A stretch of 64,000 nt of DNA, taken from Phaeosaccion multiseriatum (taxonomy: Eukaryota; Protista; Ochrophyta, other classes). Where the stretch lies: the NCBI GenBank assembly GCA_965112735.1, contig OZ218953.1, positions 3,596,001-3,660,000 on the forward strand, in the 5' to 3' direction. How positions within the stretch are numbered: the first letter of the stretch is position 1; each line of letters begins with the position of its first letter. The position numbers were made by a program, and so were the translations under genes. The notes under the pieces were generated by a model. It saw only the letters and a list, made by a program, of their open reading frames with translations, was not told where the DNA came from and searched no databases. Positions 7,480-60,264 of this stretch are shown here, piece by piece.

Positions 7480-9273
7480 CTAGGCCTTCGCACCATCCCG
7501 GACACCTTCACCTGACACGCCGCTGTCATTGCTGTTGCCACTGCCCTCTCCGGCAGCGGCGGCATTGGCGGCGGCTGCTGTTGCACCCTCCAAGGCCTCC
7601 GCCATGACGCTCAAGTCGCTGAGGCCTCGCACCTCCTCCGCCACGCCCTCCAGCAGCGCCCTCCGAGCCCCCCTCTGCATGAGTACCGCCTGCTGCCTGC
7701 GCCTGGCCCCACGAGCGCCCGCTCCAAAGTCGTCCCATATGCAACTCCGCATCTCCAGCAGCAGCTCAGAGGGATGGGTCTCCAGCGCCACTCGCAGGGC
7801 AGTCTCCTCGTGCTCTGCCGCCAGGGCCACGAGCTTGCTCACGATTTCCTGCTCCCCTCGGAGGCGCGAGAAGAGCACAGCCGCTTCCAGGTCGGCCCCT
7901 CCTTCGAGCAGCGGCCCCACCACCGCGTCTCTCTCCGAATGTATGGCCACGATGAGCGGAGTCACACCGTTCTCCTGCTGCGTTGCGTTCACGTCCGCGC
8001 CCCTGGCAATGAGGATCTCCACGCAGGCAACGTGCCCCCCCTGAGCCGCCATGTGGAGACAGGTGGCGTGGTCTGTCCGCAGAATGTCGGTCCGTGCCCC
8101 ACCTGCGAGCAATTCCCTCGCCACACCGTCGTGCCCCTGCACGCAGGCCGCGAAGAGCGGAGTCGTGCCGTCCCGATGTCTGCTGTCCACCTGCGCACCT
8201 CCCCGCAGCAACTCGCGCACCACCGCCGCTTGGCCCGACTGCGCGGCCAGCAGCAGGGGGGTGGCCCCTCCCTCCAGCGTCATGTGCGGGCTGCTCCCTG
8301 CTGCCAGCAGAGTCCTCGTCACATCCCCATGGCCTCTCTGCGCTGCCCCGAACAACGGAGTTGCGCCGTCTGTCCTCTGCTGCAGGGGGTCGGCTCCAGC
8401 AGCGAGGAGGCTCTGCACCACGGAGTCGTGGCCGTTGGTGGCTGCAATGAAGAGGGGAGTCATGTCCTCCGGGGAGGAGGGGTCGCTGCGGTCTGTGGAA
8501 GGCTGGTCTGCAGGGGCCCCTGCGGCCAGGAGGTGGCCCACTATGGCGGTCCGCCCTGCCGAGGAGGCGTTGAAGAGAGGAGTGGGACCCTGGGGAAAGG
8601 GCTGCGCGGCGGAAGCACCGGCTGCCAGCAGCAGCCGCACAATGTCCTCGTGCCCGCCCTCCAAAGCGATGTGAAGCGGGCTCAAGCCGTCGTAGGTGGC
8701 TTTAAAAATGAGCGCCCCGGAGGAGATGAGAAACTCTGCAATATCGACGTGGCCGTGGTAGCACGCCATGGCCAGCGGCGTTACACCCTGACTGTTAGCC
8801 TTCTCAATGTCCGCCCCCGCCTTGTGCAGCACCTGCACCACGTCCAAGTGGCCCTGCATGCCGGCCCGAAGGAGGGGCGTGTAGGGCGTCGCCGTACCCC
8901 CCTCGTTCACGTCAGCCCCTTCCTGCAGCAGCAGCTTCACGGCCTCGACTCGGCCCCAAGAAGCCGCCCAAGTGAGGAGGGTGGCGCTGGTCTCATAGTC
9001 CTCGCCCAGCGGTTTGTCCATGGAAGCGCGGCCATCCTTCCGGACAAAGTTCTTGAGGGCAGCCGCAGTGGCCTTCATGGTCGCGCCTCTCTTCATGGCG
9101 TCCACGAGCAGCTTGGCCTGGACAGGGTGAGGGTAGGAGGGAGAGAAGACGGAGTGAGTGAGTAGGAAGGGAAAGAGGCAGGGGAGGCCAGCAGGAGGAG
9201 AAGAGGCAAAGTCGTTTTTCGGCTTCATTTGCCTCACCTCCTGGGAGTAGTGGGTTTTTCGGTTCCTCGGCAT
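7480..9273 (-). CDS. Ankyrin-repeat protein (2 exons, about 11-12 ANK repeats)
   Basis: Tandem G.TPL..A...G...VV..LL..GA repeats in ORF 7480..9471. Exon 1 (MPRNRKTHYSQE, 9273-9238) splices in phase to 9117. Confidence 0.9.
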   Translation of the reverse strand: MPRNRKTHYSQEVRQMKPKNDFASSPPAGLPCLFPFLLTHSVFSPSYPHPVQAKLLVDAMKRGATMKATAAALKNFVRKDGRASMDKPLGEDYETSATLLTWAASWGRVEAVKLLLQEGADVNEGGTATPYTPLLRAGMQGHLDVVQVLHKAGADIEKANSQGVTPLAMACYHGHVDIAEFLISSGALIFKATYDGLSPLHIALEGGHEDIVRLLLAAGASAAQPFPQGPTPLFNASSAGRTAIVGHLLAAGAPADQPSTDRSDPSSPEDMTPLFIAATNGHDSVVQSLLAAGADPLQQRTDGATPLFGAAQRGHGDVTRTLLAAGSSPHMTLEGGATPLLLAAQSGQAAVVRELLRGGAQVDSRHRDGTTPLFAACVQGHDGVARELLAGGARTDILRTDHATCLHMAAQGGHVACVEILIARGADVNATQQENGVTPLIVAIHSERDAVVGPLLEGGADLEAAVLFSRLRGEQEIVSKLVALAAEHEETALRVALETHPSELLLEMRSCIWDDFGAGARGARRRQQAVLMQRGARRALLEGVAEEVRGLSDLSVMAEALEGATAAAANAAAAGEGSGNSNDSGVSGEGVRDGAKA

Positions 9274-9732
9274 GGTGGTGAGGGCTATTGCGCGTGCGGG
9301 CGTTATTTTGTTGACCGAAGCCAGGAGGGGCCTGCCGCCCAGAAGCCAGAAGCCAGAAAAACCTCGCCTGGGGCCGATGTGTGGGCGTGTGCATGTGAAG
9401 GAGGCATGCCCTCCACTGCCATCCGTCCGCCTAAAAGTAGCGCGGCGGGTGACATTGATATCATTTTCCATTTTCCATTAGGAGAAGAGGAAATGAAAGG
9501 GAGAAAAAAAGATATACATCCATCCATGCTTAGGTTAAGTAAGTCCTCTTCCCCCCCTCCTTCGTTACAATAGAAGGCCTAAGACCCAATGAAAGGGGCT
9601 GTTAAGAGCTGCGAGCCGCTCCCTACGGCATGTTAATTCAAGGCCTGTTAAGCAGTTAAGCCCCCCCAAGAGAGATCAAGAGCTACGAGCTCCCAGCAGC
9701 GAGCTCCCAGCAGCTTGCCAAGAACTCAAGAG

Positions 9733-33491: not shown

Positions 33492-35723
33492 TCATCCCCC
33501 CACGACCATGAGCAGCACCCCCGAGTTTCCCTCCTGCGCGGACGCGCTCACACCCTCCAAATCCTCCTCCACATAGGCGAGCAGCAGCGGCCTCAGCACT
33601 GCGGCGTTTCCTCTCGACCCGTGGCCCTGCCCCACGATGACCTCCACCTCGCCCATCACCTTTTCCACAAGCACCACGTGGCGAAGGGCCGCCTTACTCG
33701 CACCACTCGTGAAGCCGTGCAGGTCCAGCGTCCTCTCGAGACGCTCGTGCCAGTGCGAAAAGACGCCCTCGGACACCGCCCTCGCGTACAGCTCCGCTGC
33801 CGCGTCTTCCTCGCCCTGGGCGAAGCACGCGTCGATGAGGACGCTATAGGTCACGTGATTTGGTTGGACTCCGTCGGCCACCATCTCCTCCAGTAAGCCG
33901 CCCATCCCCCGCTGCACGTCTCGCCCGTCGTCGCCGGAGAGGGCCGACAGCACCGCGTTGTATACGATGGTGTTGGGCCTGAGCCCGTCTCGTCTGAGAC
34001 GCCCCAGCAGCCCGAGCGCCTTGCCCCCCTCCCCAGCCTTGCTGCAAGCGGTAATCGCCGAGCTGTAGGCGATCAAGTCAGGCTTAATTCCGGCCTTACG
34101 CATCTGCGCAAAGAGGGCCAATGCCTTGGGACAGTCGCCGGCCTTGGCACACGCGTCAATTGCAGAGCCGAATGTGATGACGTTGGGTCGAACGCCGTCC
34201 GCTACCATCTCGCGCAGCACGTGCATTGCCTGCTCCACATTGCCCGAATTGGCGCACGCGCTGAGAACCGAGTTAAAGGTGATAATGTCGGGAGCAATGC
34301 CGTGCCTCCGCATCTCCTCCAGCAAGTCAAGCGCGGTGCTCAGGTGCCCGGCGTCCCTTCCGCAGGCCGAGATGCATGCGTTGAAGGTGATGACATCAGG
34401 AGAGAGGCCGTCTCTCTCGCGCATGTCCCGAAGCAGCCCGAGAGCCTGCTCGTACTCTCCTGCGTTGCCACACGCCGTGATGGCAGTGTTGTAGCTTACA
34501 ATGTCTGGGGAGAGCCCCTCCTGCCTCCGCATCTCGCGGAAGAAGCTCAGAGCCCGTTTGTACTCCCCCACTCGCGAGCACGTGTCCATGAGCGAGTTGA
34601 AGCTCACGAGGCTCGGAGTCAGCCCGCACTCCTTCATTTCCCGCAGCAAGGCGAGCGCTGGAGCCAGCCCCCGTGCACGTGCGCCCCTGCAGGCGGAGAT
34701 GAGTGCGTTGAAGACACGCACATCCGGCTTGATGCCGTCCTCCTCCTTCATTTGGGCGAAGAGCGCCAGCGCTGGCCGGAGTTTTCCTGCCTTGCCGCAC
34801 ATGGTAATGAGGGAGGTGTATATGATGAGATTTACGCGGAGTCCAGCGGCACGCATCGCATTCAGCAGCGCGATGGCTTCGACGTGCCCTCTGGAGGCCC
34901 CACACGCGGTGAGGAGGCGGTTGCACAACACCATGTCCGGCTGGAGTCCGTAGTCTGTCTGCATTTCCTTCAAGAGCACCACCGCTTCCTCAAAGCGCCC
35001 TCCCGTCTCACAAGCGGCCACCGCGGAGAAGTACGTGATGCTGTTGGGGCACACCCCCACGGCCTTCATTTCATTCAAGACGGCGAGGGCTTCGTCGCAC
35101 CTCCCAGCCCTCCCCACGGCCTCAATTACAGATGTGTACGTCACCACTGTGGGCTGCAGGCCCTTGGCCTTCATCTCCGCGAGTAAAGCAAGCGTCCCTT
35201 TCCACCTCCCCGCCCTGCCCAGCGCAGTAATGGCGGCTGAGTAGCAAATGACGTTCACCTCCACCCCGTCCCTGCGAGCCCTCTCCAGTGCCCCACCCAC
35301 CGCCCTCCACCTCTTCTCCTTCCCAAGCGCCTCCAGTTCCTTCCGCAGCCTGATTTGCCTCGCCTTCATGCTCCGGGGGTCGAAGTATCCTGGTTCCCGC
35401 TGCTGCTCTTGATGCTCTCTGGCGGGGCTGTTATCGAAGTGGTTAGATCCTGATCCACGCTCATGGCGATCCAGTGGCACTGCAGTTACTGGAACGAGCC
35501 CGTCAGAGTCAGACAGAATCAGGCGTAGAAGGCCAGTCCATCTCCCATCGGCACGAACAGAGCGAAAACCAAGACATCTGCCCTCCGGCCTCTGTCGCTT
35601 CCGCGGACGCTCTGGCAGGTGAGTGCGGCCGCTACGCGCTCGTGGAACCTGCCCATCACCTCTGCTCTTCCACCAGAGAGAGGGGTGTCTAGTGCTGTCC
35701 GTTGGGACAAAGGCTAGGGCCAT
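33492..35723 (-). CDS. Pentatricopeptide-repeat protein with a C-terminal Smr domain (intronless)
   Basis: About 14 tandem 35-aa P-class motifs (e.g. PDIVSYNTAITACGNAGEYEQALGLLRDM). Smr motifs: LDLHG and VIVGQGHGS. The start codon is uncertain. Confidence 0.92.
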   Translation of the reverse strand: MALAFVPTDSTRHPSLWWKSRGDGQVPRARSGRTHLPERPRKRQRPEGRCLGFRSVRADGRWTGLLRLILSDSDGLVPVTAVPLDRHERGSGSNHFDNSPAREHQEQQREPGYFDPRSMKARQIRLRKELEALGKEKRWRAVGGALERARRDGVEVNVICYSAAITALGRAGRWKGTLALLAEMKAKGLQPTVVTYTSVIEAVGRAGRCDEALAVLNEMKAVGVCPNSITYFSAVAACETGGRFEEAVVLLKEMQTDYGLQPDMVLCNRLLTACGASRGHVEAIALLNAMRAAGLRVNLIIYTSLITMCGKAGKLRPALALFAQMKEEDGIKPDVRVFNALISACRGARARGLAPALALLREMKECGLTPSLVSFNSLMDTCSRVGEYKRALSFFREMRRQEGLSPDIVSYNTAITACGNAGEYEQALGLLRDMRERDGLSPDVITFNACISACGRDAGHLSTALDLLEEMRRHGIAPDIITFNSVLSACANSGNVEQAMHVLREMVADGVRPNVITFGSAIDACAKAGDCPKALALFAQMRKAGIKPDLIAYSSAITACSKAGEGGKALGLLGRLRRDGLRPNTIVYNAVLSALSGDDGRDVQRGMGGLLEEMVADGVQPNHVTYSVLIDACFAQGEEDAAAELYARAVSEGVFSHWHERLERTLDLHGFTSGASKAALRHVVLVEKVMGEVEVIVGQGHGSRGNAAVLRPLLLAYVEEDLEGVSASAQEGNSGVLLMVVGG

Positions 35724-35986
35724 CCTTTGGGTGTGTGAGAGAGAACACCACCAACCGCACCGAGCGGCAATTGGGCGTACCACCAACCCGCCCACCTGCA
35801 CCCGCCCCCCTCCCACCCTTCCCCCTCCTCTCAATAGATCCTCAATAAAATCCCCTCCTCTCTCTTTCTCTCCTCCTCCCTTCTCCTCTCCCCTCTACGT
35901 TCTGGCCATCGATCTCTCGTTGGTATTCGATAAGGTGTCGATAAGGTATTAGAGGGACTTGGGTGGGTCCTGTGGGGGTCTTCCCC

Positions 35987-44921: not shown

Positions 44922-45423
44922 GAGAGAACCAATCTGGAGCGGGCGGTGAGCGGCCGCTGTCGGCGATGCTCGAGCCAGTGCCGATTTGTTCAACACTTGA
45001 ATACGAACCGGCAGTTTTTCCTTTAAAAATCCTTTTTTGGAATCATCAAACTGAGTTGGTTGCAGCCCCCTGGGAAACCCAAAACTGCGGCTCTCCTTGT
45101 TTCTCCCCCTTCCACCTGGAGCCTCCTCCATAAAGCTGGGCAGAAAGAGAGAAAGAGAAGGATATCAGGGCACCACCAGCAGCGAGGGTACAGGCGGAAG
45201 AGAAGGGACAAGAGCAGTAGTAGCAGTAGCAGCAGTACTCGCAGCACTGGCAAGTAGTTAGCCGCAGCAGCCGCGTCTTTTCTGAGCACAACACAATTTC
45301 CGCACCTCTTCAAGGTCTGGGTAAATTCCGGTGGATATCGATGGACAGTGGCGCAAGCGCAATGTCTTTCTTTTAAGAGGGGTGGCGGTCGGGGCAGGAA
45401 GACGAGGACAAGGAGACGAGACC

Positions 45424-46034
45424 ATGACGGGGCCCGTAACCACCAAACGCCAGCGGCTGATGAGCATAGATTTTGGGACGGAGGAAAAGGGTTTTGACGA
45501 TCATGATGTGAGTGGGGCCATCGAGCAGCTCCTCGTCGACGACCAGTTTGTGGAGCTTCCCTCTGTGGTGGAGCGCAACGCAAAGATCCAACTCGTCCAG
45601 CAAGAGCAGCAGCAGCAGCAGCATCAAAGAACGAGGATCGAACAGCCGCAAACCAGTTTGGGGGACACAACGAAGAACAGGCAAGATGGGGAGGACCACA
45701 ATTCTGCGGCAGGAGCCGCAGAAAGGGTGTCCGTGGTGGACGTGGGAGACGGGGAGGGGGAGGGGGGCGATGATGTGTCCCCGTATGACAACTTTGTGTC
45801 GTCGTCGGGCGCGTCGAGCCCGGTAACGGGGGGGGGCGATACCTCTTCCACCTCCAGTTCCATGGATATGGACGAGAATCCGGAGTGCGGAGAAGCCGGG
45901 CTCATGGCCATCCCCATGGACTTTCGGGCGAGGGGGGACAGCGTGGATTGGGCCGGGGCCGTGCGCAACAACACGGCCGCCATGACCTTTGACTTTTTCG
46001 GGGATGAGAGCATGGACGGGGTGTCTTCTTCCCC

Positions 46035-46074
<40 letters not shown>

Positions 46075-48147
46075 GGCGCGCGGGTCAAGAGGGAGAGGGG
46101 CGAGTCTTTGGGCTTCTCCAGCGTCCTGGGCAGTGGCTCAAATGGTACGGGTGGGGCGGGCGTCGATGGTGCCCACAAGGTGTCTGTCGAGTGTGAGGAA
46201 GTCACGGGAAGACTCGTGTCGGCAGTGCAGACACGCACCCCCGCGCTTGCCGCCACCCCGGTGCTGAGGATGGGCCACGACGGGTCCGAGGGCGATGACG
46301 AGGGCGAGGACGAGGAAGAGGAGGCGAACAACGGGGACGACGACGAAGCTGATGGGGGAGGAGACACGGACGACGTGGATGAGGAGGGGGACGACAGCGA
46401 CCTCGAACCGCAGCCCCTTGTGCGCTTGGTCACAGTGGACAGCAACGGAGAGGCGTGTGGTGCCCTGCCCACGCAGAGGCCCTCGCAGCAGCGCCGCCAA
46501 CACGTCAAGCAGCCCTCGCCGGCGAGGAGAAGAGAGGGGAGGGGGGCGCGCAGTCGCGATGAAGCAACGGACTGCAGGGCCACGCCAGCACTGTCAGCAG
46601 CACCATCAGGAGGACTGTCAGTCAAAGCAGCAGCTGCAGCAGCGGCAGCAGCAGCAGGAGGAGGAGTGGAGGGACTTTCGGCGGCCTCTGCAGCTCCTAC
46701 GAGGCAGACAAGAGCTTCCTCCGCCAAGCACACCAGGGCCTCCTCCACGGAATCCGCGTCTTCTTCTTCCTCTTCTTCTTCTTCCGCGGCCGCACCAGGG
46801 GCAGTCACGGGAACGAAAAAGTCCGCCCGAGCAGCTGCCATGGCAGCAGTCAAGGCGGCGGAAGCCGAGGCGGTGGCGACGGCGACGGCGGCGGTGGCGG
46901 CTGCTGCGGCGTCGGCGATGACGACGTCAACTGGTTCTTCCTCGGCCCAGCTGCTGCCCGCGTCCGTCAGCATCCCCGCCCCTGTGCCCGAGGCGGTCGC
47001 TCCCTCTGCCCCCACTCCCACTTCTGCTGTTGCGGCTTTCGCTGCTGCGGCTCCCCTCGGCGCGGCGGAGGCAGGGGTGGAAGTCATGCCCCCCCTCTGT
47101 CCCTACTCCAATAGCTCCAGCGGCATCAGCCCCCCGGGCTTCGTCGGCGCCTACTCTCCGGCCGAGAGGGCGCGGCGTGTGGCCCGCTACCTCGACAAGC
47201 GCAGCCGAAGGGTGTGGCGCAAGAAGATCAAGTACGACTGCCGCAAGAAGCTCGCAGACTCCAGGCCACGCCTCAAGGGCCGCTTCGGTAAGTCGTGATT
47301 GTTGTTTGTGAGCAGACCCATTTGTATTTGTCGCTGTTGCGTGCCTCGGTTTTTATTCTTGTTGCTGTTGGTCTCGTCTTCTATTTTATTGATTTTTTGT
47401 TTTTGGCCTGTGTATTCCTCCCGTCTTCTCCACCCCCCCCCCGCCTCTCGAGCCGATCACTGGTCTTTATACTGGTTGCGAGTCTCGTTTTTCTTCTCCT
47501 TCTCCTTGCTGTTGGTCTCCTCTCCCTCTCCCCCTTCCGCCTCTTAATTTTAATTTGGCCTGTTGTATGCCCCTTTTCTCCCCCCGCCGCTTGTCTCGTC
47601 TCTCTCAGTCACCAAGGAGGAGCTGGAGCAATACAAGGCTGAGAACGGCGGAGTGCTGCCGGAGGAGCTCAAGCGCCAAATGGGCATCTCCACAGAACCG
47701 CTCGGGAGCGACGACAGATGCGGCGCAGACAGCCCCGCAGACGTGTCCGACTACTTTAGCCTCAGCCCAGTCACCAGCGGCAGCAGCCAGGCCTCGGGGG
47801 GCAGGAAGAGGAATCGGAGCGGGCGCCGCAGCGGGGCGTCGGCATCAAGCAGGAAGCGGAGCCGCGGCGGAGGTAAGCAGCAGCTCTCGCACGAGGACGA
47901 CGACGAGGAGGAGGAGGAAGTCGACTCCAGTGAGCAGCAGCAACAGCAGCAGATGGAGATGGAGATGGAGCAGCCTCGGCGCAAGAACCGCAGTCAGTCT
48001 CTGATGGACTGCGAGCTGCTCGTCGACATGGACGACCACATCGGAGAGCTCCGCCTGCACAACCTCATGGCGGACCACGGCTCCGGAGCCGGGCCCCTTC
48101 CCACCCCTTCCTCCTCGGCTTCCAGCGGACTCGAGCTGCTGGCCTGA
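45424..48147 (+). CDS. CCT-domain protein (putative transcriptional regulator), 2 exons, largely low complexity
   Basis: GAYSPAERARRVARYLDKRSRRVWRKKIKYDCRKKLADSRPRLKGRF|V is a CCT motif. The intron at 47288-47608 is in phase. Confidence 0.88.
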
Positions 48148-49415: not shown

Positions 49416-52400
49416 CTAATGGCAAGGGGTCTGAAAGAAGGCCAAGTCCGTTGGTCGCAGAGCGCCGCTGTCCGGGACACTGCTCGGGCCGGACTTGTCG
49501 CTCCCGGTGGTCTCCACTGTACCAGCGGGAGACTCCGGAGGCGGCTCGCTGCCCTCCCCCCTGTCGTCGCTGCCTTGTTCGTCACCCACATCGCCCCTAA
49601 GGGTGGCAGCGGGCGGCAGAGAATGGCTGAACGGCCCCTCCTCGTCGTCTCCGGGCTGCAGGCGCTGTAGGGGAGCTACCGCCTTACCGCGGCGCCATCG
49701 ATCAATCGCGCGGGCACATTCCTTGCTGGTGCCGTCGCCGAGAGAGAACTCCTGCCGCCGCCTGTAATCCTTCGCCCACTTTTCCAGCCGTGGTACAGCC
49801 ACGACCAGGAACAAGACGGTGCCCCCCAGGAAATAGGCGAGGACTAAGAGCACCGCAAACCCGTCGTTAACGTCGTCGTCCTCTCTCTCCCCCGCAGCTC
49901 CTGCTGCTCCCTCCGCCCCCCGTCCATCCCCCAGGGCGCTCCAAGCCGCCACCCCCACCACCCCTTCGCCGCCCTCCGCCTCAGCCTCGCCCCCTTTTGT
50001 TGGGTGCTCCATGAGTACATCCAAGTCTGCCCACGTCAACTCAAGCACGCGAGACTCCTCGTCGCACGCCCCGTAGCTCACCAAGATGCGCTCGCTGCCC
50101 GCCAGGGTGAGGCCAGAGACGAACACGGGGCACTTGTCCGGGTCCGAGCTGTGGTGGTAGGGTAGGAGTTCAGTAATAATAAAGTAGAGCACAATAAGAG
50201 AGAGGAGAACAAACGCGTGATCACGGTAGGGTAGGAGTTCAGTGAGTACAGCGCAACAAGAGAGAGGAGAAGACATGTGAGGAAGAAGAAGAAGAAGAAG
50301 AAGAAGAAGAAGAAGAAGAAGAAGAAGAAGAAGAAGAAGAAGAAGAAGAAGAAGAAGAAGAAGCAAAGCGCTGTGGTCGGTCCTTCTTGAATGACAATTG
50401 CATGCCTGAACCTCAACAAGTGCATGACGTCGGGCCTGGGAGAGCTCTCTCCATCTCTCTCTACCCTCCTATCTCCAGCTACTTGGGGTCCCAACTTGGG
50501 GCCAAGTCAGCACCTGCACGCACGCGCACACGCACGCGCACACGCACGCACCTGACGACGGGCAGTGGCCTGCTAATGGCCAGCGGGTAGAAGGGCTCCT
50601 CCGCCGTGAAGGTGACAAGGTAGTTGGTGTACGTGCCATCCTTGCCGAGCGTGTGGAAGGCAGCGAGTAGATAGTCAGGCAAGAAGGCGTTGTCCACACG
50701 GAGTGCGTTGGAGCCCCCGTGCAGCTCCACCTAAGGCACAGGGGGCAAGGGCGGGGAGGAGGAGGGAGAGGAGGGGAAGAGAGGAGAGGGGCGCGGGGAG
50801 AGGCGAGGTAACCACGGGAAGGTGAGACGCGGGGAAGCGCAAGCACGAGAGAATCCGGGAGAGGGAAAGCACAAAGCGCAAGCAAGCACGAGGGAGCCTT
50901 GATTGAGGCCCCTACATCCTTCCCACCTAGAGTCTACCTACCGGTCCACCCTACATACCTGCATGGCATTGCTAAAGTACAAGACTGGGGTGGTGACGGC
51001 GGGGTACTCCTGCGCGATGGCACCGCTATCCTCATCGAGCCGCAGGGGCGTGAAGGGTGACAAGTGGCGGATCATACCTAGCCCCCTGTGTGATGGGCGG
51101 TGTGGCGGTGTGTGCGATGAGTGGGCAGGGGGGGATGCGTGGAGCGATCGGTCGAGGGGCCACACACAGAAAGGGGGGTGGGGCAGCACCCGGGCAGAGA
51201 GAGTGAGGGTGAGCGGGAGGGGATGAGAGAGACAGGGGGCGCATTCACAACTGGCGCACACGAATCACCAATGAGAGACGAGGGCCGAGTCCTATCCTCC
51301 CGTCAAGTTTCAAGCGCTCGATTTGCATCGCGTGAAGCAAGTGAGGGAGGGAGGGAGGGAGGGGGTAGGAACACACGCGCGGATCGGCCGCACTCTGCAG
51401 TCGGCAGTTCACTCACTCGACTCGACAGACTGATTTTGATTGCTTGGTGCACCGTACTTACGATGGGCTTTCGGACGCCGCCCCTCCTCCTCCTCCTCCT
51501 CCTGCTGCTGCTGCTGCTGCTGGGATCTCAAAGGCCATCCAGTTCTTCTCAAACAGCTGCACGTCCGACGGCGCCGAGGAGCCGGACCCCCCGGGATGGG
51601 AGAGCTGCGACGCCAGCACCACCTGAGGAGAAGGGAGAAGAGGGAGAGAGAGAGAGAAGAGACAGAGGCACCGGGAGGAGCGGAGAGGGAAAGAGAGAGA
51701 GAGAGAGAGAGAGAGCAAAGGTCAAAACCGTCCGTTCCACTCCAGCGCTTTGGCCCGGCGAGAGAAGAGTCGGCTTCAATTGGCTGCAGGCGCGTGAGCA
51801 TCGAAAGCGACCCCCCGACACTTCAAACGAGGCAAGAAGGAAGGAGGCAGGCCAAGGACGAAACGATACACTCTTCTCACCTCGTCCTGCTCGGTCCTTG
51901 CTCTGAGGTCGCCCTCGGTGATGAAGGGACTGCCGATGGTGACTCCTGACGTCGGACACTCGCCGCCCTCCTGCAGCAGTGGGAGTCAATCAATCAGCAC
52001 GCCACAGACACGAACATACACACACACACACAGAGCAAGGGAGATGGAATCAGAGCGAGCGGCATCAGTCGTATGCACCACCTCCCACGCCTGCCTTGTG
52101 GGTGGGTCGGTCGACCGATTGCAAAGCTCCCTTCTTCCCTGTGGCACGGCACTCCCCTTCTTCCTTGTGGCACTCTTGCAAAGCATGCCCTATCGAATCA
52201 ATCACCCAATCACATGAACTACAGCGCTGCCAACTACCGGCGCATGTGCATGTTAACATGCAGTTGAGCTCCACCCATAACTTAGCACCCCCACCCGCAT
52301 AACCGCAGCGAAATGCACCCACCCCCGCACCCACTCACCTGATTGGGCAGCGTAGAGAAGAAGGTCATTTTGAGCTCCCCGTTGTGCTCGAACAGCCTCG

Positions 52401-54570
52401 GGTCCTGCGGGCCCGTCACCACCTGCTTCGTCCATGTGTCGTTCGCCGCGTGGTACACTGGAGCCAGCACACACGGGATCCACTCCGTCTCCTCCTTCTC
52501 TGCTTGGGTCAAGGCCGAGGGCGCGAAACGCAGCACCTGCAGATGATCACCGTTGAGAGGGGCGAGGGTCTCCGGGTCGACTTGTCCGAACACAATGTCG
52601 CTGTTCCAGGTGGTGGTCACGAGGGGCGAGCCGTCCAGCGTCTCTCCCGGGGTGGAGTCAAAGTCCATCCGGTGCCTTCTCGCGGCCACGAACATGGATC
52701 CGTCCTCGAGCATGAGCAGAGAGGGGTTGATGAATGCAAACTCGTACTGCCTGGCCTCGTTGCTGCTGCTGCTGCTGCTGCTGCTGCTACCAAGGGAGAG
52801 GCCTCGGAGGGACGAGCCTCGGCTACGGGTAGAGCCGTCTGCCTCTACTGCCAGGGCTGTCGTCGTTGCTCTGGAGGAGGGGACGGGCAGCGGCTCCGAG
52901 GTGGTGAAGTTCAGGCGTGTGTCTGTCGCCCCTGTGCGGTATGCGATGAAGGCCGGCGACAGAGGGCCAGAGACGTCGAGGCCAGCGCTAGAGGCTTCAG
53001 AAGAGGCACCGTCGGAGGGGGTCTCGAGGCCCAGCGAGACTGCCCAATCCTTGTCCACAGAGGTGGGCACCATACCCCAAAGGGAAGTGAGGCAGAGGGC
53101 CGCCACAGCAAGACCCCCCAGGCGCTGCACAAAAACCTTGTCCCCCTTGTGGTTAGGAAGCACCTTCTTGGCAGCTCGGGTGGCGAGGATGGCCACCGCC
53201 AGGAGGAAGGTTAGCATGCCCAGATCTGCAGGGAGTGGGGTGGAGAAGGGAGGCAGTCAGAGACATGCTGTCAGGGGGTAGGGAAGGACTGAGTGGGCAG
53301 TGGAAAGCACGAAAGGTTAGAGCATCACAGGTCACAGGTATGGGCATCAGGAGGGTGCATCGCCCAGGGGAACACCAGCAGAGCTGCTCCTGTGCCACAC
53401 CACACCTCACACCCGAGCACAGCACACAGCATCCCCACGCCGCCTCCTCGGTAGTTGTAGTTGGGTTGCTTGGCTCGATCGATCGATACACGCACCCATG
53501 CACTCACACACACACACATACACGACTCACTCACGCACGCACGCACTCACCAGCGTAGCCACCCCACACGTTGAAGGCCACAAACTGAAACACGTACACC
53601 GCAAAGGAGTATCTGCCGGCCACTCGGAAGGGCCACAGGTTGAACAGCAAAGCTACAGGGTCCTGTCCCAGGGCCAGGCCCAGCAAGATGAGGCCCTGCA
53701 GAGGGGCGAGGGCTCCGAGGCGGCATGTGAGCTTATAGGAGGGCGGCTGCACCTGCCTAATGGTGAAGACGAGGAGGAGGCCGAAGTAACCGACGGTGGC
53801 GCCGTACTTGAAGACCATGGGAGGGGAGTCACGGAAGTTCCTGGAGGAGAGTGAGTGAGAGAGAGAGAGAGGTGGGTGAGGCAAGAGAGGAAGAAGGTAG
53901 AGATGGAAGAAGAAAGGAGTGGGTGAGGTAAGGCATCGTGCTGCACCAACACTGACCTGAACAAGTAGGCGAGGCCCACTCCGTAGGCGTAAAGGTGTGC
54001 GTAGAAGAGCGGGAAGAACTTGAGCATCACAACGAAGATGTCTTCCCAGGACTCCGTGGCGCCTGAAGGGAGGGGTGGGGTAGGGGAGGGATCGCATCAT
54101 AGGGGCGAGGGTACGGGAGAGGGAAGCAGCAGCAGCAGCAGCAGCAGCAGGAGGAGGAGACAACAGCAAAGGGGATAGGGTGGCGCGGGGCGGGAAGAGG
54201 GAAAGGTAGAGCGGCGTGAGTAAGTGAGTAGTGAGGGAGGGTGGGCGGTGGCCGCCGTCGGAGAGGACAGACGGCCGAGCCGTATGTGTGTGTGTGTGTG
54301 TGTGTGTGTGCGTGCGCGCGTGTCTGTTCCCGGGCCCCGTCCTCCCCTTCTTCTCCCCAACTCACCGAAGGAGTGGGCGCTGTACCAGTCCGCCTCTGCC
54401 TTGGGCAGCATGTAAGCGAAGATGGCAGGCAGCCACCCTACAAGCGTCAGGGAGGTCATGACCGCCACCAGCCCGCGTCGGTCCAGGGACGCGAAGAAAC
54501 GCTCCATGCGACCGTGCAAGAACCTTTGGGTGTGTGGGGGGGGGGGGGTTGGGTGGGTGTTGCGTGTTTG

Positions 54571-54616
<46 letters not shown>

Positions 54617-57600
54617 TATGTGTGTGAGTGTGTGTTGGGACTGTGATTGTGTTCTCCCTCTGATTTGTGGCGGTGATTGTGTTTGACTACTGTGGTTCTG
54701 ATTGTGACGGTGTTTGACTACTGTAGTTGTGTTTGTATTCCCCCTGTGATTCGTGATTGTGTTTGTCTATTGTGATTTGTGATTGTGTCCTCCCCGTGAT
54801 TTGTGATTGTGTTGTCCCTGTGATTTGTGATTGTGATTGTGTCCTCCCTATGATTTGTGTTTTTGTTTGTCCCTGTGCTTTTGTGATTGTGATTGTGTGC
54901 GTGTGTTCCTGGAAGTGCGTGTGTGTGCGTGTTCTTCTCTCTCTGTGTGTGTTTATGCCTCTCTCTGTGTGGTGTGTGTATGGTATGTGTGTGTGCGTGT
55001 TTGTTTGCTTCTCCCCCCCCCCTCTGCGGTCTTCTCGCCCCTCACCCCCACACACGCCGCCACCCCCACTCATCGCATTGGGGCTAAACACGACTCTGAC
55101 ACTCCACATTGCTCTGCGCCTACCCTGACTTCACGCACACACGCACACATAGAATCGCTAAGCAAGCAAAGCCATCCATTCCGCCTCCTTCCTCCCTCTT
55201 CTTACCAGAGTGGTGCGATGGCGCCGAGGAACCAGCAGTGTGACTGCAGAACGTTCTCCGTGATCTTGGGGATCCATGCTTGCGTCAGCGTCACGCTCGC
55301 TACCGTCTCGAGCCAAGTGATTTGGTGCCTCCGGTCGTCCTTCACCGCCACAAAGAAGGCCGCCACCAACCCGAGGAGGTACACGGGGTACACGCTCTTC
55401 AAGCGCGCGAAGAGGAACAAGAGCGAGGCCCGCAGCTCCTGTCCCGGCTGTTGCTTCTCCTGCTTCTCCTCCTGCTGCTGCTGCTCCTGTTGCTGCTGCT
55501 CTTGCTGCGTCCCAAGGGGGGCGGTGTGGGCAGCGAAGGCTGCGGGGGAGGACGGAGTTTGAGTTTGGGATCGAGCGGGGAGAGCCGCTGCCGCCGCGTG
55601 CTGCTCAGCGCCATCCATCGTGCGTGCCAATCGCTCCACCGTGGCGCCGCTTTGGCCTACACTGACCGCCTCCGCTCCTTGTGCCGCCGCAGCCGCAGCC
55701 GCAGCCGCCTCCCTGTCCTTGTCCTCTTCCTTGGCCTGCCTCTTGAGCGAAGAGTAGGTGAGCACGAAGCCGGAGAGCATCATGAACCAGGGCACCCAGG
55801 TGAAGCCCCAGCCGATGATGTACCAGCGGGGCGTGGCCTGCGGGGAGGTGCCGAAGTAGTGCCCGCCAACGATGTGCTGGGAGGCGAGGAAGCGAGCCCC
55901 GTCTAGAGCGCTCAAGTAGCCCCACCCACGCATGCCACCACCGCCGCCGCCACCACCGCTGCTGTTGCTGTTGCTAGGGCTGCTGCTACTGCTGCCGGCC
56001 TCACTACGCCCTCTGACGCTATTGCCGCTCTTACCCCTGACCCACGCGACGAGGTCCCTCTTCCTGTCACCGGGCGAGAAGACGGACTTCTTCGCCTTCT
56101 TGGGGCTCTGGTGCTCCGCGGTCCTTTGCCCCTGCCCCTGGTCCTGCCCCTGTTCCTGCCTCTCTGCCAGTGCCTGCCCGTGTGCCGGTGCCAGAGGAGG
56201 GGGAGGGGGGCTCTCTTCCTCCTGATGCGAAGGAGAGCCCTCGAGTTTCGGCCCCCTGCGCAGGGCCTGGGCCCTGACCCAGCGCGTTGCCTGACCCCTC
56301 GCCCGGTTTAGCTTGTCCATCCCACCAAGCCACAGGCTCTTGGCCTTGTCCCTCACACAAGCCGACATGCCCGAGATACCTTTGCTCTGCACATCAGCCT
56401 TGGCTTGGCGCAGCATGCCCATCACACCTTGCCTGTCCCTGCCGCCTTGTTGTGGTGCTTGTCGGCTGCTGCCACTGGCCTGAGACGGCCGTGCCTTGGC
56501 CAAGGTGTGCAGCACGAGGAGGAGGGAGAAGGCCGCTGACACCGCCTTGAGGGGGGTGTACTTCCACGGTGTGTATGCCTCGGGCCCACTGCTGCTGCTA
56601 CTGCCCGAGGAAGAGAGGGCCTCAAAGGCCGCATCAGCAGCCACCGTCTCAGTAGCAGAAGCAGAAGCATTTGCAGCAGCAGCGCCAGCAGCAGCAGCAG
56701 TAGCCCCTCGCAGGGAAGAAGTGGCGACATTGCTGCCACTGTCGCTGTCGCTACCGCCGTCGGAGCCACCAAGGCCAAGGGCGGACTCCTCCGCGGCTTG
56801 GCTCGAGTTGTAGACCGGAGTCATGTAGGTAGGCACGGGCTCCTCGTCCAGCACAAGCCTCGAGTAGTCCACGACCTCCGGCAGGGGGAGGGGCCGCGCC
56901 TCTGTAGGGGGAGACGGGGCTGTGGTGGGGACGGCAGCGTCCTCCTCTGCCTCTGGAGAGGAGGTGCTAAGAGTGTTGTCCTCCGAGGCCTCGGATTCCC
57001 CCGTGGCCGCCGTCGTATCCGGAGCCGGAGTAACCCCCCCGCGGCCCTCTTGGTCCTCCTGGCTCGCTTCCGTCGTCCCCTCTGTGACCTCTGGGGGCAA
57101 GGAGTCAACGTCGGTGTCTGTGTCTGCTGTGGGGACAGCGTCATCATTCGGCAGCGCGTACGTGGTGACTCGACAGCCCCTGTGATAGTGCTCCCACCAG
57201 CCCTCTCCAGGGGGATGTCGGTACGGATTACAACCCTCGGAACCCACAATCTGCGTTTGTGTGTGTGTGTGTGTGCGTGCGTGGAGGGGGACACAAGCGG
57301 TGAGAGGTGGGCATGTCCAGTCCACGTCATTACTCCGTCACAACTCCGCAGCAGCAGATGACAATAAATGAGGCGTTCGACGGAGCCTCTCGCGCAATAT
57401 TAGCTCCTCTACGTGACTCTACACACCCACCTAGCCCCGCCTGCCTTTCTCCGTCGACCTCTACCACCGCCGCGAGTCACCCCAACCGCACCCCCCCCTT
57501 CCCTCACCCTCAACCCCACGCACCTGCTCCTCGCACTCTGCTCCTTGCACTTCATCTGCCTTGCACGCCACAGAGACGATGCGCTGGAACATGAGCAGCG

Positions 57601-59763
57601 ACGTGATGTGCGTGGGGTGGCCCATCAACACACCGGGGAAGTTGTCGTCCAGTTTCATTCCGTGGGCGTTGAGGACCAAGCCGTTATACGTAGTCGCCAT
57701 CTGCGGGAGAGGATGGAGGGGCACAGTGTTATTGTGTGGTGCGCAAGCGTGGTATCACCATCATCACATGTGACCATAACAAAAGGGCGGCAGGGGTGGG
57801 CAGTGGTGATACTACTGACAAGCACCATGGCGGTCGGCAATGCTTGTGACAAAAGTGCTCGCGTCGCTTTCTTAACATGCCACGCCCACGCCCACACTTG
57901 CCTGCTCCACCACCAAGCCGACGCCGTACAAGTACTCCGCCTCGTGCACAAAGACGGGCACAATGTTGGGGAAGTTCTCTGCCAAGACGTCCCCCACGCG
58001 GCTGTACTGCGTGTACACAAAGTCGAGCATGGCGTCAACGGGCCCGTCTCGGATGGCCAGGAGCTCCGCGCCCTCCTCCCCGAGTGCGTCACATGCCCCC
58101 CACGCGTCGTTGACAGGGTTGGCGCAGAAGCCGTACCAGGAGCCAATGCCTATCACGAAGTAGCCTGTGGCGTTCTGTTTATGCGGGGCGGGGAGAGGCA
58201 CGGAATGGAGTGGAGACAGCGGAGTGCGAGCTTTCAGTTAGGGGGCAAGCGGGGGAGGGGTGAGGAGGTGAGAGCGACAGGTAGTCTCTCCTCTGTTCTT
58301 TGATCCTCCAAAAACACGGGCCCGGCCCCTGGTCATTATTCCGCTGTGGGTAATGTACACACAACTAGGTGGCATGGCATGCCCCCCCCCCAAAGGATAT
58401 GCATATATACATCCACCCTACCCTCCGTATCCTACCCTTCCAACGCACGCACGCACGCACACGCACCTGTCTCCCGGCGGCCACGAGGGCGTGGAGGTGC
58501 TCAATGACTAGAGAGGCTGACACGCCTTTCCCGAAGGCTACGCTTGGCCTGCTTGACGGGTCGGGGGCGTAGACGGAGGCACAGTCGGAGATGTCCTCGG
58601 TGACGCTCCCTGGGAGAGCAGTAGTACCAGCAGCAGTAGCAGCACGTGAGGAGAAAGGCGAGGGCCGGCCCGGACCAAGGCATAGATCAGGAGAACGCGC
58701 TACAGGTACAACCCTTCCCAGGCCTCAGGGAAACGTGGTCCCTTCGGGAGGTGACGGTTTCCATGCAAGCCCACGTATTGCATTCTCTCCTACTCCGCTT
58801 CTTCCTCACCTTCCTTTGAGACCACTCCCTGGCCCTCCTCGATGACCACCTCCGCACACATGATGTTTACGAGCGAGCCCTTTGGGGCCTCGGCGTCCCA
58901 ACCCGGAGCCCCTCCGTCGAAGAGCCACTCGTGGAAGTCCAGGTCCTCGCTGTACTGCTCGCCCAGCCACGGGAACACGCCCCCCATGAGGCCGGACATG
59001 ACGCTACCGCCAGCGATGAAGATGAGCTGGTCCTCTCCTTCTCGGGTGGTGAGGCACTGCGCCAGCTCTTCCTGGTCGTAGAAATGGAAGTGGCACTCGT
59101 GTGGATCTGGAGGAGAGAAAAGACGAGGGAGATTGTGTGGGAGAGGGAGAGGGGTCAGCGGAGGGAGCCACAAAGGGGCCGCACAGAAGCAAAGGCTCTA
59201 CTCTCTTGTGGCGAGAGGAGAGGTGAAGAGCTGAGGGGCCAACACCACCCACCTTCAAGCTCAAAAGTGTTGCACAGGGTAGATCCGTCCTCTGTGGTGT
59301 CACACCTCCACTGTCCTCTGGTGGATACATCAGCGCAGCGAGGGGTGCAGGAGTTGGGTCGAAAGTTGGGATTGGGCACCACCACGACCTCCACTCCGTC
59401 TTGCCCTGCGCGGGAGGAAGCGAATCGGCACCAGCGGCCAGGGCAGAGAAAGAGGGGGGATGAGTGGTGAGGTGTATGCGTGGGTAACAATGGGCGAGAT
59501 GGAAAAATATGAGGAGTGGGCATGAGTCGGCACCGCACCCTCCCACTACCCCCCCCCACTTCTCCTTGTGACTAGCAGCCTGGTGAATCATCACACCCTC
59601 CTCTTCTCCCATGTGGATGCAGTCTTATTGCTCTCCCCCCACTCGTCTGCTTATGATGACTGTCCTCAGCTCAGGGACACAAAAACTCACCTCGGACTGG
59701 AGTCGAGGTATTTACCAGCATGAGAGCAACGGCGGCAAACGTAGACGCTGCCATCGGTACCAT
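49416..59763 (-). CDS. ~1,960-aa membrane protein: signal peptide, SGNH/Cas1-TBL-like domain, TM, acyltransferase-3 domain, GT91/GH130-like beta-propeller, TM (16 exons)
   Basis: Exons 59763-59691, 59405-59253, 59106-58810, 58609-58467, 58174-57902, 57700-57524, 57250-55206, 54523-54366, 54062-53957, 53840-53551, 53225-52339, 51970-51881, 51622-51462, 51085-50959, 50730-50552 and 50148-49416 are all phase-compatible. AT3 motifs: LDGARFLASQHIVGGH, FMMLSGF, RLKSVYP, GRYSFAVY. Propeller motifs: INPS, GPQDPRLF, EKNW, HGGS, VSYGACD. Confidence 0.8.
50283..50362. repeat. (GAA)n microsatellite, intronic (TTC on the sense strand)
   Basis: Directly visible. Confidence 0.95.
54570..54990. repeat. Intronic (GT)n plus degenerate (GATTGT)n repeats
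   Basis: Recurring gtgatttgtgattgt blocks between GT runs. Confidence 0.8.
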
Positions 59764-60264
59764 TGCTCCTCTCCGCCCCGTCATACCTCCCCTGAATAGC
59801 AAGTGTTGGGCAGCAGCAGCGATAGGCGTGGCGAAACTTGGAATTAAGTGTTCAGTGGCGTGGGATCAAAACGGCAATATCCAAGACATGGAACAATGCC
59901 CGCCACTCTTGGCAGACCGCCACGCCCTGAGCTCAGTAGAGCACAGCACACGACATGGCGCTCCTTACCATTTATCAGGGAGTCTCGGGTGTGCTTTTGT
60001 ATGGAATGAAGTGTATTTGTGTATTTTGTTCTGAAGATCCTTGTTTGTGGCGGTTTGTTGTTTTTTCTTTTCCACGATCCACCCTGAAACGAACGTTTCA
60101 ATTTGCAACAAGCTGCTCCTCCTCCTTTCTTTTCCTTCTCTTCCTTCCCTTCTCAACTGCTGGGGAAGGGGGGGATACGACCTCCTCTCCTCTTCCCATT
60201 CTACCTACCTCCTCCCTCACTCCTCCTTCTCCTCCTGCTGCTGCCCTTCTTCCTTAGGGAGTGG

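Follow-up and report, generated by a model that had tools for sequence, protein, structure and literature searches.

The stretch analysed here, called the window throughout, comprises 64,000 nucleotides (nt) of contig OZ218953.1 of the ochrophyte Phaeosaccion multiseriatum (assembly GCA_965112735.1, positions 3,596,001 to 3,660,000). On its minus strand, from position 59763 to position 49416, it carries a 16-exon gene with a coding sequence of 5,892 nt, stop codon included, and a product of 1,963 amino acids (aa). Three modules were distinguished along this protein: an N-terminal module with a predicted SGNH fold, a middle module assigned to the acyltransferase-3 (AT3) domain, PF01757, and a C-terminal module predicted to form a five-bladed propeller.

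A single gene and its relatives

The gene was rebuilt without the earlier exon list, by chaining stop-free minus-strand segments through splice-site scoring, inspecting the DNA at their boundaries and aligning homologues. The exons obtained were 59763-59691, 59405-59253, 59106-58810, 58609-58467, 58174-57902, 57700-57524, 57250-55206, 54523-54366, 54062-53957, 53840-53551, 53225-52339, 51970-51881, 51622-51462, 51085-50959, 50730-50552 and 50148-49416. An original prediction for this DNA had proposed one reading frame of 5,892 nt, about 1,963 aa, with 15 of 15 junctions in phase, and the independent reconstruction returned the same figures. Fourteen introns are GT-AG and one is GC-AG, all splice sites are consensus-like, and the sole stop codon is the terminal one, after 5,889 stop-free nt. 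One 16-exon gene with all its junctions in phase is thus confirmed. The two junctions to which the prediction drew attention both exist: 57524/57250 is in phase 0, with donor CAG/GTGCGT and acceptor ACGCAG/ATT, and 53551/53225, which joins the AT3 module to the propeller, is in phase 1 and uses the strong sites CTG/GTGAGT and CCTGCAG/AT. The codon split by the latter is GAT (Asp), and the same Asp is found in the Chrysoparadoxa orthologue described below (...GWADFGY...). Within exon 11 alone, a single open frame encodes two membrane helices and continues into the first blades of the propeller, which makes the link between membrane helices and propeller independent of the choice of splice sites.

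Some details of the model may shift slightly. An in-frame ATG at 59784 is an equally possible alternative start. The GC-AG intron is intron 5 (57902-57700), with donor CAG/GCAAGT at 57902/57901. This GC donor is the only in-phase donor with a consensus context; GT donors that are in phase but weaker occur up to 30 nt away in both directions, and with them the end of exon 5 may move by a few codons. A frameshifted continuation of exon 11 past 52339 was considered and rejected. Past that point, frame 1 reads ...LPNQVSGC and the next frame encodes FRCGYAGGGAKLWVEL just after the exon 11 donor (52334-52240), both resembling the orthologue. Scored against the family profile, the spliced propeller reached 254 bits with exon 12 (51970-51881, 90 nt), which is reached through the canonical donor CAG/GTGAGT, versus 245 bits for the frameshift alternative and 240 bits without the exon. 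The FRCGYAGGGAKLWVEL stretch may be left over from an earlier exon arrangement or may be due to chance.

Relatives were collected by an exhaustive HMMER search with the first propeller exon (E up to 0.001) over 1.84 billion representative proteins, taken from clusters at 50% identity. Only 33 representative proteins were found, which makes this a rare family. In nine of these 33 clusters Pfam places an AT3 domain (PF01757) directly upstream of the matching C-domain. Nearly all the other matches show AT3 upstream by local BLASTP, or start within the final AT3 helices as a result of truncated contigs; the clear exceptions are P0010 and P0032. The members occur in several algae and protists, their sources include a Mataza transcriptome and several metagenomes, and their records bear names such as 'unnamed protein product' and 'hypothetical protein'. 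Word-index homologue searches with the whole orthologue, with its propeller and with the family profile returned almost nothing beyond the query, because the index is swamped and the relatives are too distant. The window's own protein was absent from the protein collections searched.

The best match, P0001, is an 'unnamed protein product' of Chrysoparadoxa australica (CAM9132528.1, 1,485 aa). The spliced window protein is collinear with it over residues 34-379 (E 7e-29), 815-879 and 982-1768 (E 1.5e-153), identity being 31% for the N module, 49% for AT3 and 48% for the propeller. The first of these alignments covers the N module and the last AT3 plus propeller; given such collinear matches, the gene model is not a product of chance. 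Two other relatives bear on the fusion itself. P0036 (1,294 aa) is the product of an intronless open reading frame (ORF) of 3,885 bp, free of interruptions and with the same module order, on a 309-kb metagenome contig with eukaryote-type neighbours, and P0041 (1,592 aa) was assembled by Trinity from transcripts. Other organisms thus have the three modules in this order within one ORF of an intronless genome and within one mRNA, and the fusion is real.

In spite of this, the modules of the window could in principle belong to two or more genes, or to a pseudogene, the single frame then being an artefact of splice choice. Such a reading can draw on the one junction that needs a GC donor, on the partly orthologue-like frameshifted continuation past 52339, and on the sequencing runs checked for the locus, none of which, among those recorded as RNA, contains it. 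Four runs of unknown kind from one study do contain 93-97% of the locus words; they are probably DNA, because the introns are included in the words found. We nevertheless regard separate genes, a pseudogene or a prediction artefact as very unlikely, because the intronless P0036 and the transcript-derived P0041 keep the three-module order. The collinearity with P0001, the stop-free 5,889 nt with consensus-like sites, the span of exon 11 across membrane helices and propeller, and the advantage of exon 12 over the frameshift alternative all argue the same way. The single polypeptide of the original prediction thus stands.

Further observations concern the composition of individual relatives and their surroundings. 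In P0041 (residues 97-183) and P0043 (residues 32-118), which belong to a different branch of the family, an ILEI/PANDER-like domain (PF15711, E ~1e-20) lies ahead of the SGNH-like one, which makes these four-module chains. P0010, a Trinity transcript of 1,013 aa, has an ILEI domain and an N domain 65% identical to that of P0041, followed directly by the propeller, with no AT3 and no membrane helices between the two. P0010 may be read as a soluble isoform or as an artefact of assembly; in the former case it would speak for joint action of propeller and SGNH-like domain. Beside P0036, on the same strand (L001:1423-2544), lies a gene for an NAD-dependent sugar epimerase/dehydratase that matches GDP_Man_Dehyd, Epimerase and 3Beta_HSD; this adjacency may be chance in a compact eukaryotic genome.

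The window is eukaryotic DNA of about 60% G+C, with short GT-AG introns rich in (CA)n and other microsatellites. Within the gene, intronic microsatellites at 50240-50400, 54540-54620 and 53480-53540 comprise a CTT/GAA-type run and several (CA)n runs; the former reads as poly-Leu, poly-Phe or poly-Ser ORFs, and such repeats yield many spurious ORFs. Other large open exons of the window encode ankyrin repeats (7480-9471, minus strand), a pentatricopeptide repeat protein ending in Smr (33492-35834, minus strand) and a CCT motif (45331-47298, plus strand); none of these has to do with glycan metabolism. No glycan gene cluster was seen around the gene among the large ORFs elsewhere in the 64-kb window.

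The three modules and their predicted membrane layout

The middle module is, by profile match and helix motifs, an AT3 domain, as originally predicted. It begins in exon 7 (55206-57250, aa 373-1054), which according to Pfam and the alignment with P0001 encodes a stalk, a transmembrane anchor, a linker, AT3 helices 1 to 5 and a loop insert. On its own this exon matches PF01757 with 29.2 bits (E 6e-07), just below the 31-bit gathering score, because the AT3 domain is split over exons 7-11. For P0001 the match to this profile scores 47 bits and covers profile positions 3-316; the scores of eight other relatives range from 42 to 60 bits. Exons 8-10 (53551-54523) encode helices 6 to about 9/10, and the homologues carry PF01757 over this region; the last AT3 helix lies in exon 11 (52339-53225, aa 1239-1534), followed by the extra helix TM11, a Ser/Thr-rich linker and the first propeller blades. 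Ten-helix membrane acyltransferases share a His in helix 1, an [ST]G-aromatic motif in helix 2 and a second, late His (PMC2824669). The window protein has QHIVGGH in the first helix (55879-55859), the SGF motif as LSGFV (55777-55763) and a conserved His in YAHLY (54003-53989), and all three are kept in P0001, P0008, P0041 and P0043. Cas1_AcylT (PF07779) did not match the membrane domain; all scans reported PF01757 only. The loop after the second AT3 helix holds a low-complexity insert of 106 aa (55744-55427), rich in Ala, Gln and Glu and open in frame, where P0001 has only 8 residues.

The N-terminal module follows a start codon and a hydrophobic signal/anchor segment (aa 1-25) encoded in exon 1 (59691-59763, donor GAG/GTGAGT). 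Based on tblastn and blastp alignments to P0001, exons 2-6 (57524-59405) encode most of a Cys-rich SGNH/PC-esterase-like, putatively lumenal domain (aa 34-379) with 13 Cys, its last 7 residues being encoded in exon 7. The alignment of eight relatives with the window exons gave the pattern C..h.f...e..CL.G.W..f.G[GSA]S, then G.WY..C, then GHP[ST]. The start of the domain, C..h.f...e..CL......G.S, resembles block I of the PC-esterases. PC-esterase PF13839 itself was unmatched in eight N-terminal regions (E up to 10) and in the window exons (E up to 1), the sole sign of that model being a language-model feature hint (0.89). An AlphaFold2 model of the P0001 N domain was moderate overall, with a predicted local distance difference test (pLDDT) score of 60 (70-90 in the core) and a predicted template modelling (pTM) score of 0.65. 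In VIA-align its first match was XOAT1 (6cci; Z 12.8 over 212 residues), a xylan O-acetyltransferase of plants from the TBL/PC-esterase family, and only SGNH-type enzymes appeared down to rank 36; further matches had Z of about 10-11, among them GDSL esterases (about 11) and the peptidoglycan O-acetyltransferase domains of OatA (10.8) and PatB. Foldseek gave weak matches (E ~3e-3) to the same SGNH families, and the shape matches in the ESM Atlas were all to SGNH-type families. On this model the SGNH fold of the N module, proposed earlier from the sequence, can be taken as settled, while its motifs depart from the canon. The nucleophile Ser is kept as G-[GSA]-S (AGGSV in the window, with its GGS serine motif at 59014-59000) and the His as GHP[ST] (GHPTH, 57622-57608), whereas the alignment showed no assignable counterpart of the block II Gly and the block III Asn.

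The C-terminal module begins in exon 11, and exons 12-16 (49416-51970) encode the remainder of the propeller, an acidic Gly/Ala-rich stalk, a C-terminal transmembrane helix and a tail of 125 aa up to the stop codon. The AlphaFold2 model of the P0001 C-domain, built on a 25-sequence alignment, was all beta, with pLDDT 81.5 and pTM 0.83. In Foldseek its top 43 matches in the PDB were all GH130 enzymes or Leishmania GT108 proteins (MPTs), with E values of ~1e-9 to 1e-6. VIA-align gave Z of 21-24.5 for GH130, 19-20 for GT108 (MPT-1/2/4) and 17-19 for GH43; the best partner was RaMP1 (Z 24.5 over 305 residues), and all other GH130 entries listed had Z of at least 21. These structural alignments span about 280-305 residues at about 12% sequence identity. 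The C module is thus, as modelled, a five-bladed propeller closest to GH130 and then to GT108, in line with the glycan-type propeller expected after AT3. A link to GT91, suggested in the original prediction alongside GH130-like enzymes, was not supported: BMT/GT91 (PF12141) reached only E 0.24 in one of 25 family members, and the one paper found on the fold of GT91 describes it as unknown (PMC8476585). GH130 (PF04041) likewise gave no sequence-level match, with a best E of 0.17 in two of the 25, and phmmer and profile searches of PDB sequences with the propeller (profile, E up to 10) found no real match. Shape matches of the propeller in the ESM Atlas (template modelling score ~0.65-0.68) comprised giant-virus proteins, some of them fused to GT2 and TPR domains, phage proteins and an Ascomycota cluster with no Pfam family; in one shape cluster 32% of the members carry PF04041.

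The family consensus of the propeller includes INPS, AARxH, WHSD, NxT, VVTGPEDP[KR], EKNW, PHxV and F.SGL...YG..D.E.R. The spliced window propeller matches the family hidden Markov model over profile positions 16-369 with the 254 bits given above, and keeps 46 of the 50 columns in which one residue is common to at least 80% of the members. Its versions of these motifs in exon 11 are INPS (52731-52720), ARRHR (52683-52669), NDT (52443-52435, within NDTW, 52443-52432) and GPQDPR (52413-52396), and further along EKNW (51550-51539) and YGACDEESR (50075-50049). The Asp of GP[EQ]DP (52404-52402 in the window) is invariant in all 25 members, and the Lys of EKNW is nearly so. In the GH130 mannosidase BT3780, Asn74, Arg89, Glu141-Asp142, Lys199 and Asp363 have sugar-binding or catalytic roles (PMC4599007). 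The family Asn (INPS), Arg (AARxH), [EQ]-Asp, Lys (EKNW) and C-terminal Asp/Glu appear to parallel these residues.

Concerning the layout in the membrane, the chain starts with the hydrophobic segment and the 13-Cys domain, continues through a stalk rich in Ser, Thr, Pro and acidic residues, and crosses the membrane in a helix at aa 603-625 (56560-56492). The linker that follows (56491-55934) is basic, with 31 Lys and Arg versus 15 Asp and Glu, which would put the beginning of AT3 on the cytosolic side, the arrangement of bacterial AT3 proteins. In P0001, the Pfam match to AT3 ends in the helix equivalent to aa 1240-1257 of the window protein. TM11 comes next (aa 1269-1291, 53136-53068), preceded by a Lys/Arg-rich loop and followed by an acidic, Ser-rich segment; AT3, an eleventh helix and an outside domain is also the layout of OafA and OatA (PMC9558356). 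The last helix (aa 1816-1838, 49862-49794) follows an acidic flank and precedes PRLEKWAKDYRRRQ, and the C-terminal tail, basic next to the membrane, would be anchored by it in the cytosol. The propeller has invariant Cys residues and a conserved NxT. From the flanking charges and the homology to the AT3-SGNH layout, both soluble modules are likely to lie on the lumenal or outer face, as had been proposed.

Comparison with known systems and a proposed function

Several known systems share parts of this architecture. Cas1p of Cryptococcus, in which a PC-esterase domain is paired with a 10-helix acyltransferase (PMC2824669), and CASD1 of animals combine in one chain a lumenal SGNH-like domain at the N-terminus and, after it, a multi-pass acyltransferase, as the window protein is predicted to do, and O-acetylate a glycan. 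The window protein differs from them in having PF01757 and not PF07779, GGS and GHP[ST] instead of GDS and DxxH, and an N domain with no Pfam match, and it adds a long cytosolic linker with its own transmembrane anchor, the C-terminal propeller and a final transmembrane helix. With the bacterial AT3-SGNH enzymes (OafA, OafB, OatA, PglI) it shares the AT3 core, the eleventh helix and an extracytoplasmic domain, and could share the proposed acyl relay from cytosolic acyl-CoA through AT3 to the outside domain (PMC7448272, PMC9558356); the SGNH domain of OatA is also among the structural matches of the N module. However, the window protein has a propeller after AT3 and its SGNH fold at the N-terminus, and it is eukaryotic, intron-rich and far larger. 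In plants, a membrane acetyl carrier (RWA) and a lumenal SGNH-like transferase (TBL/XOAT1, TBL29) form a similar couple, whose XOAT1 member is the best match of the N module, but there they are separate proteins, and PF13839 is unmatched here. XOAT1 carries the GDS and DxxH motifs, neither of which is kept in the window N module. The propeller resembles GH130 and GT108 in its five blades and in having [EQ]DP with its invariant Asp, NP[S], R and KN in the order of the GH130 active site (PMC4599007). It differs from them in its lack of a significant sequence match to GH130 (PF04041) and in its membrane tether and predicted lumenal position; the known enzymes are soluble proteins of bacteria or cytosolic ones of kinetoplastids.

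We think it rather probable that the gene encodes a real multi-pass membrane protein of the secretory pathway or cell surface, which follows the logic of the Cas1/OafA-type glycan O-acyltransferases and adds a third, glycan-engaging module. The ten helices of AT3 would move an acyl group, in all likelihood acetyl taken from cytosolic acetyl-CoA, through the membrane, by the transfer mechanism described for AT3 proteins (PMC9558356, PMC12423673). The lumenal or outer XOAT1/TBL-like domain would take the acyl group, through the Ser of GGS and the His of GHPTH, and place it on a glycan hydroxyl. TM11 would return the chain to the lumenal or outer face, where the GH130/GT108-like propeller would fill the slot that bacterial AT3-SGNH enzymes give to their SGNH domain. 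We would expect the propeller to hold a beta-linked, possibly mannose-type, glycan at the acylation site, and perhaps to extend or cleave it; its mannose specificity is only a possibility, by analogy with GH130 and GT108.

Several points weigh against this interpretation. No Pfam model matched the N module (E up to 1 for the window exons and up to 10 for the N regions of eight relatives) or the C module, in the window exons or in the 25 family members, and both folds were modelled on the orthologue P0001, whose identity to the window protein is put at 28-48% according to module, not on the window protein. The equivalence with the GH130 active site would follow from the order and spacing of motifs, not from a superposition, and the topology was drawn from flanking charges and AT3-SGNH homology. 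The N module has GGS for GDS and GHP[ST] for DxxH, so that the Asp of both motifs is absent, and the window protein is also without the Glu found in most relatives five positions ahead of the His; because of these absences the module could be a weak or inactive esterase.

Whether the propeller binds, cleaves or builds the glycan divides the interpretation further. It may be a glycan-binding module with no catalysis of its own, which would bring the acceptor polymer into position for the SGNH-like domain, as a stand-in for the acceptor-selecting extension of bacterial AT3-SGNH proteins. The propeller does occupy the position of the acceptor-handling domain of OafA and OatA (PMC9558356), its conserved GH130-like residues are mostly sugar-binding ones in BT3780 (PMC4599007), and it is only about 12% identical to active enzymes in the structural alignments. 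Yet the conservation of the invariant Asp, of other polar residues and of an active-site-like pattern exceeds what a lectin site usually requires, and we hold a binding role as possible though doubtful. It seems quite unlikely that the propeller is an inverting glycosidase of the GH130 type, trimming the glycan either ahead of acylation or after it. GH130 beta-1,2-mannosidases have the same fold and the same residues in the -1 subsite (PMC4599007), and the hydrolase structures 3qc2 and 5a7v match the model at Z ~21, but GH130 hydrolases have a Glu pair in place of the basic phosphate-binding residues, whereas motif comparison finds conserved His, Tyr, Ser and Arg in the later blades of this family. 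Because it has the invariant Asp, and these residues instead of paired Glu, we lean towards a catalytic propeller that would act with a sugar phosphate or a nucleotide sugar, rather than a mere binding module.

A catalytic propeller of this kind could be a lumenal GT108-like glycosyltransferase that uses, for example, GDP-mannose to extend a beta-mannan-like chain, which the same polypeptide would O-acylate. The fold is common to the GT108 mannosyltransferases (Z 19-20), GH130 enzymes with transferase activity share it (PMC12814180), the catalytic Asp motif is invariant and the EKNW Lys nearly so, the conserved His, Tyr and Arg of the later blades could bind phosphate, and giant-virus relatives in shape are fused to GT2 domains. 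Set against this are the lack of a GH130 or GT91 match at the sequence level and the comparison with GT108, which was by fold only and ranked below GH130. Moreover, to our knowledge all characterised GT108 enzymes are cytosolic. We consider this glycosyltransferase a tentative alternative of modest likelihood. The fullest version, in which the propeller is an active lumenal GH130/GT108-type beta-glycosyl (mannosyl) transferase and one chain both extends a surface glycan and O-acylates it through an AT3-to-SGNH relay, is by analogy conceivable and in our view rather unlikely. If true, this propeller class would gain its first member in the secretory pathway, and a single-chain machine that polymerises and acylates would be known for the first time, conserved across several algal and protist lineages.

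The original prediction did not recognise the three-module architecture. In the literature on AT3 architectures and on AT3-propeller or GH130 fusions we found no description of it and no family name, the fusion of AT3 to alanine racemase being one architecture that has been described (PMC9558356). The architecture is, however, already present, unnamed, in public protein sets, namely in the nine PF01757 clusters, in the others in which AT3 was found by BLASTP, and thus in CAM9132528.1 of Chrysoparadoxa australica, so that the claim that it is unseen is not supported. The family is thus unnamed, and two of its three modules fall outside Pfam models.

Glycan O-acetylation, whether in bacteria, plants or animals, still poses the question of how AT3 passes its acyl group on to the correct acceptor. 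By joining a membrane carrier, a TBL/XOAT1-like domain and a GH130-like propeller in one chain, this family fixes their stoichiometry and their side of the membrane, and offers a natural system for probing the acyl relay and for finding the glycan. Marine algae have acetylated surface polysaccharides for which few biosynthetic enzymes are known. The family would extend the GH130/GT108 propellers from bacterial catabolism and the cytosolic storage mannan of kinetoplastids to the secretory pathway of marine algae.

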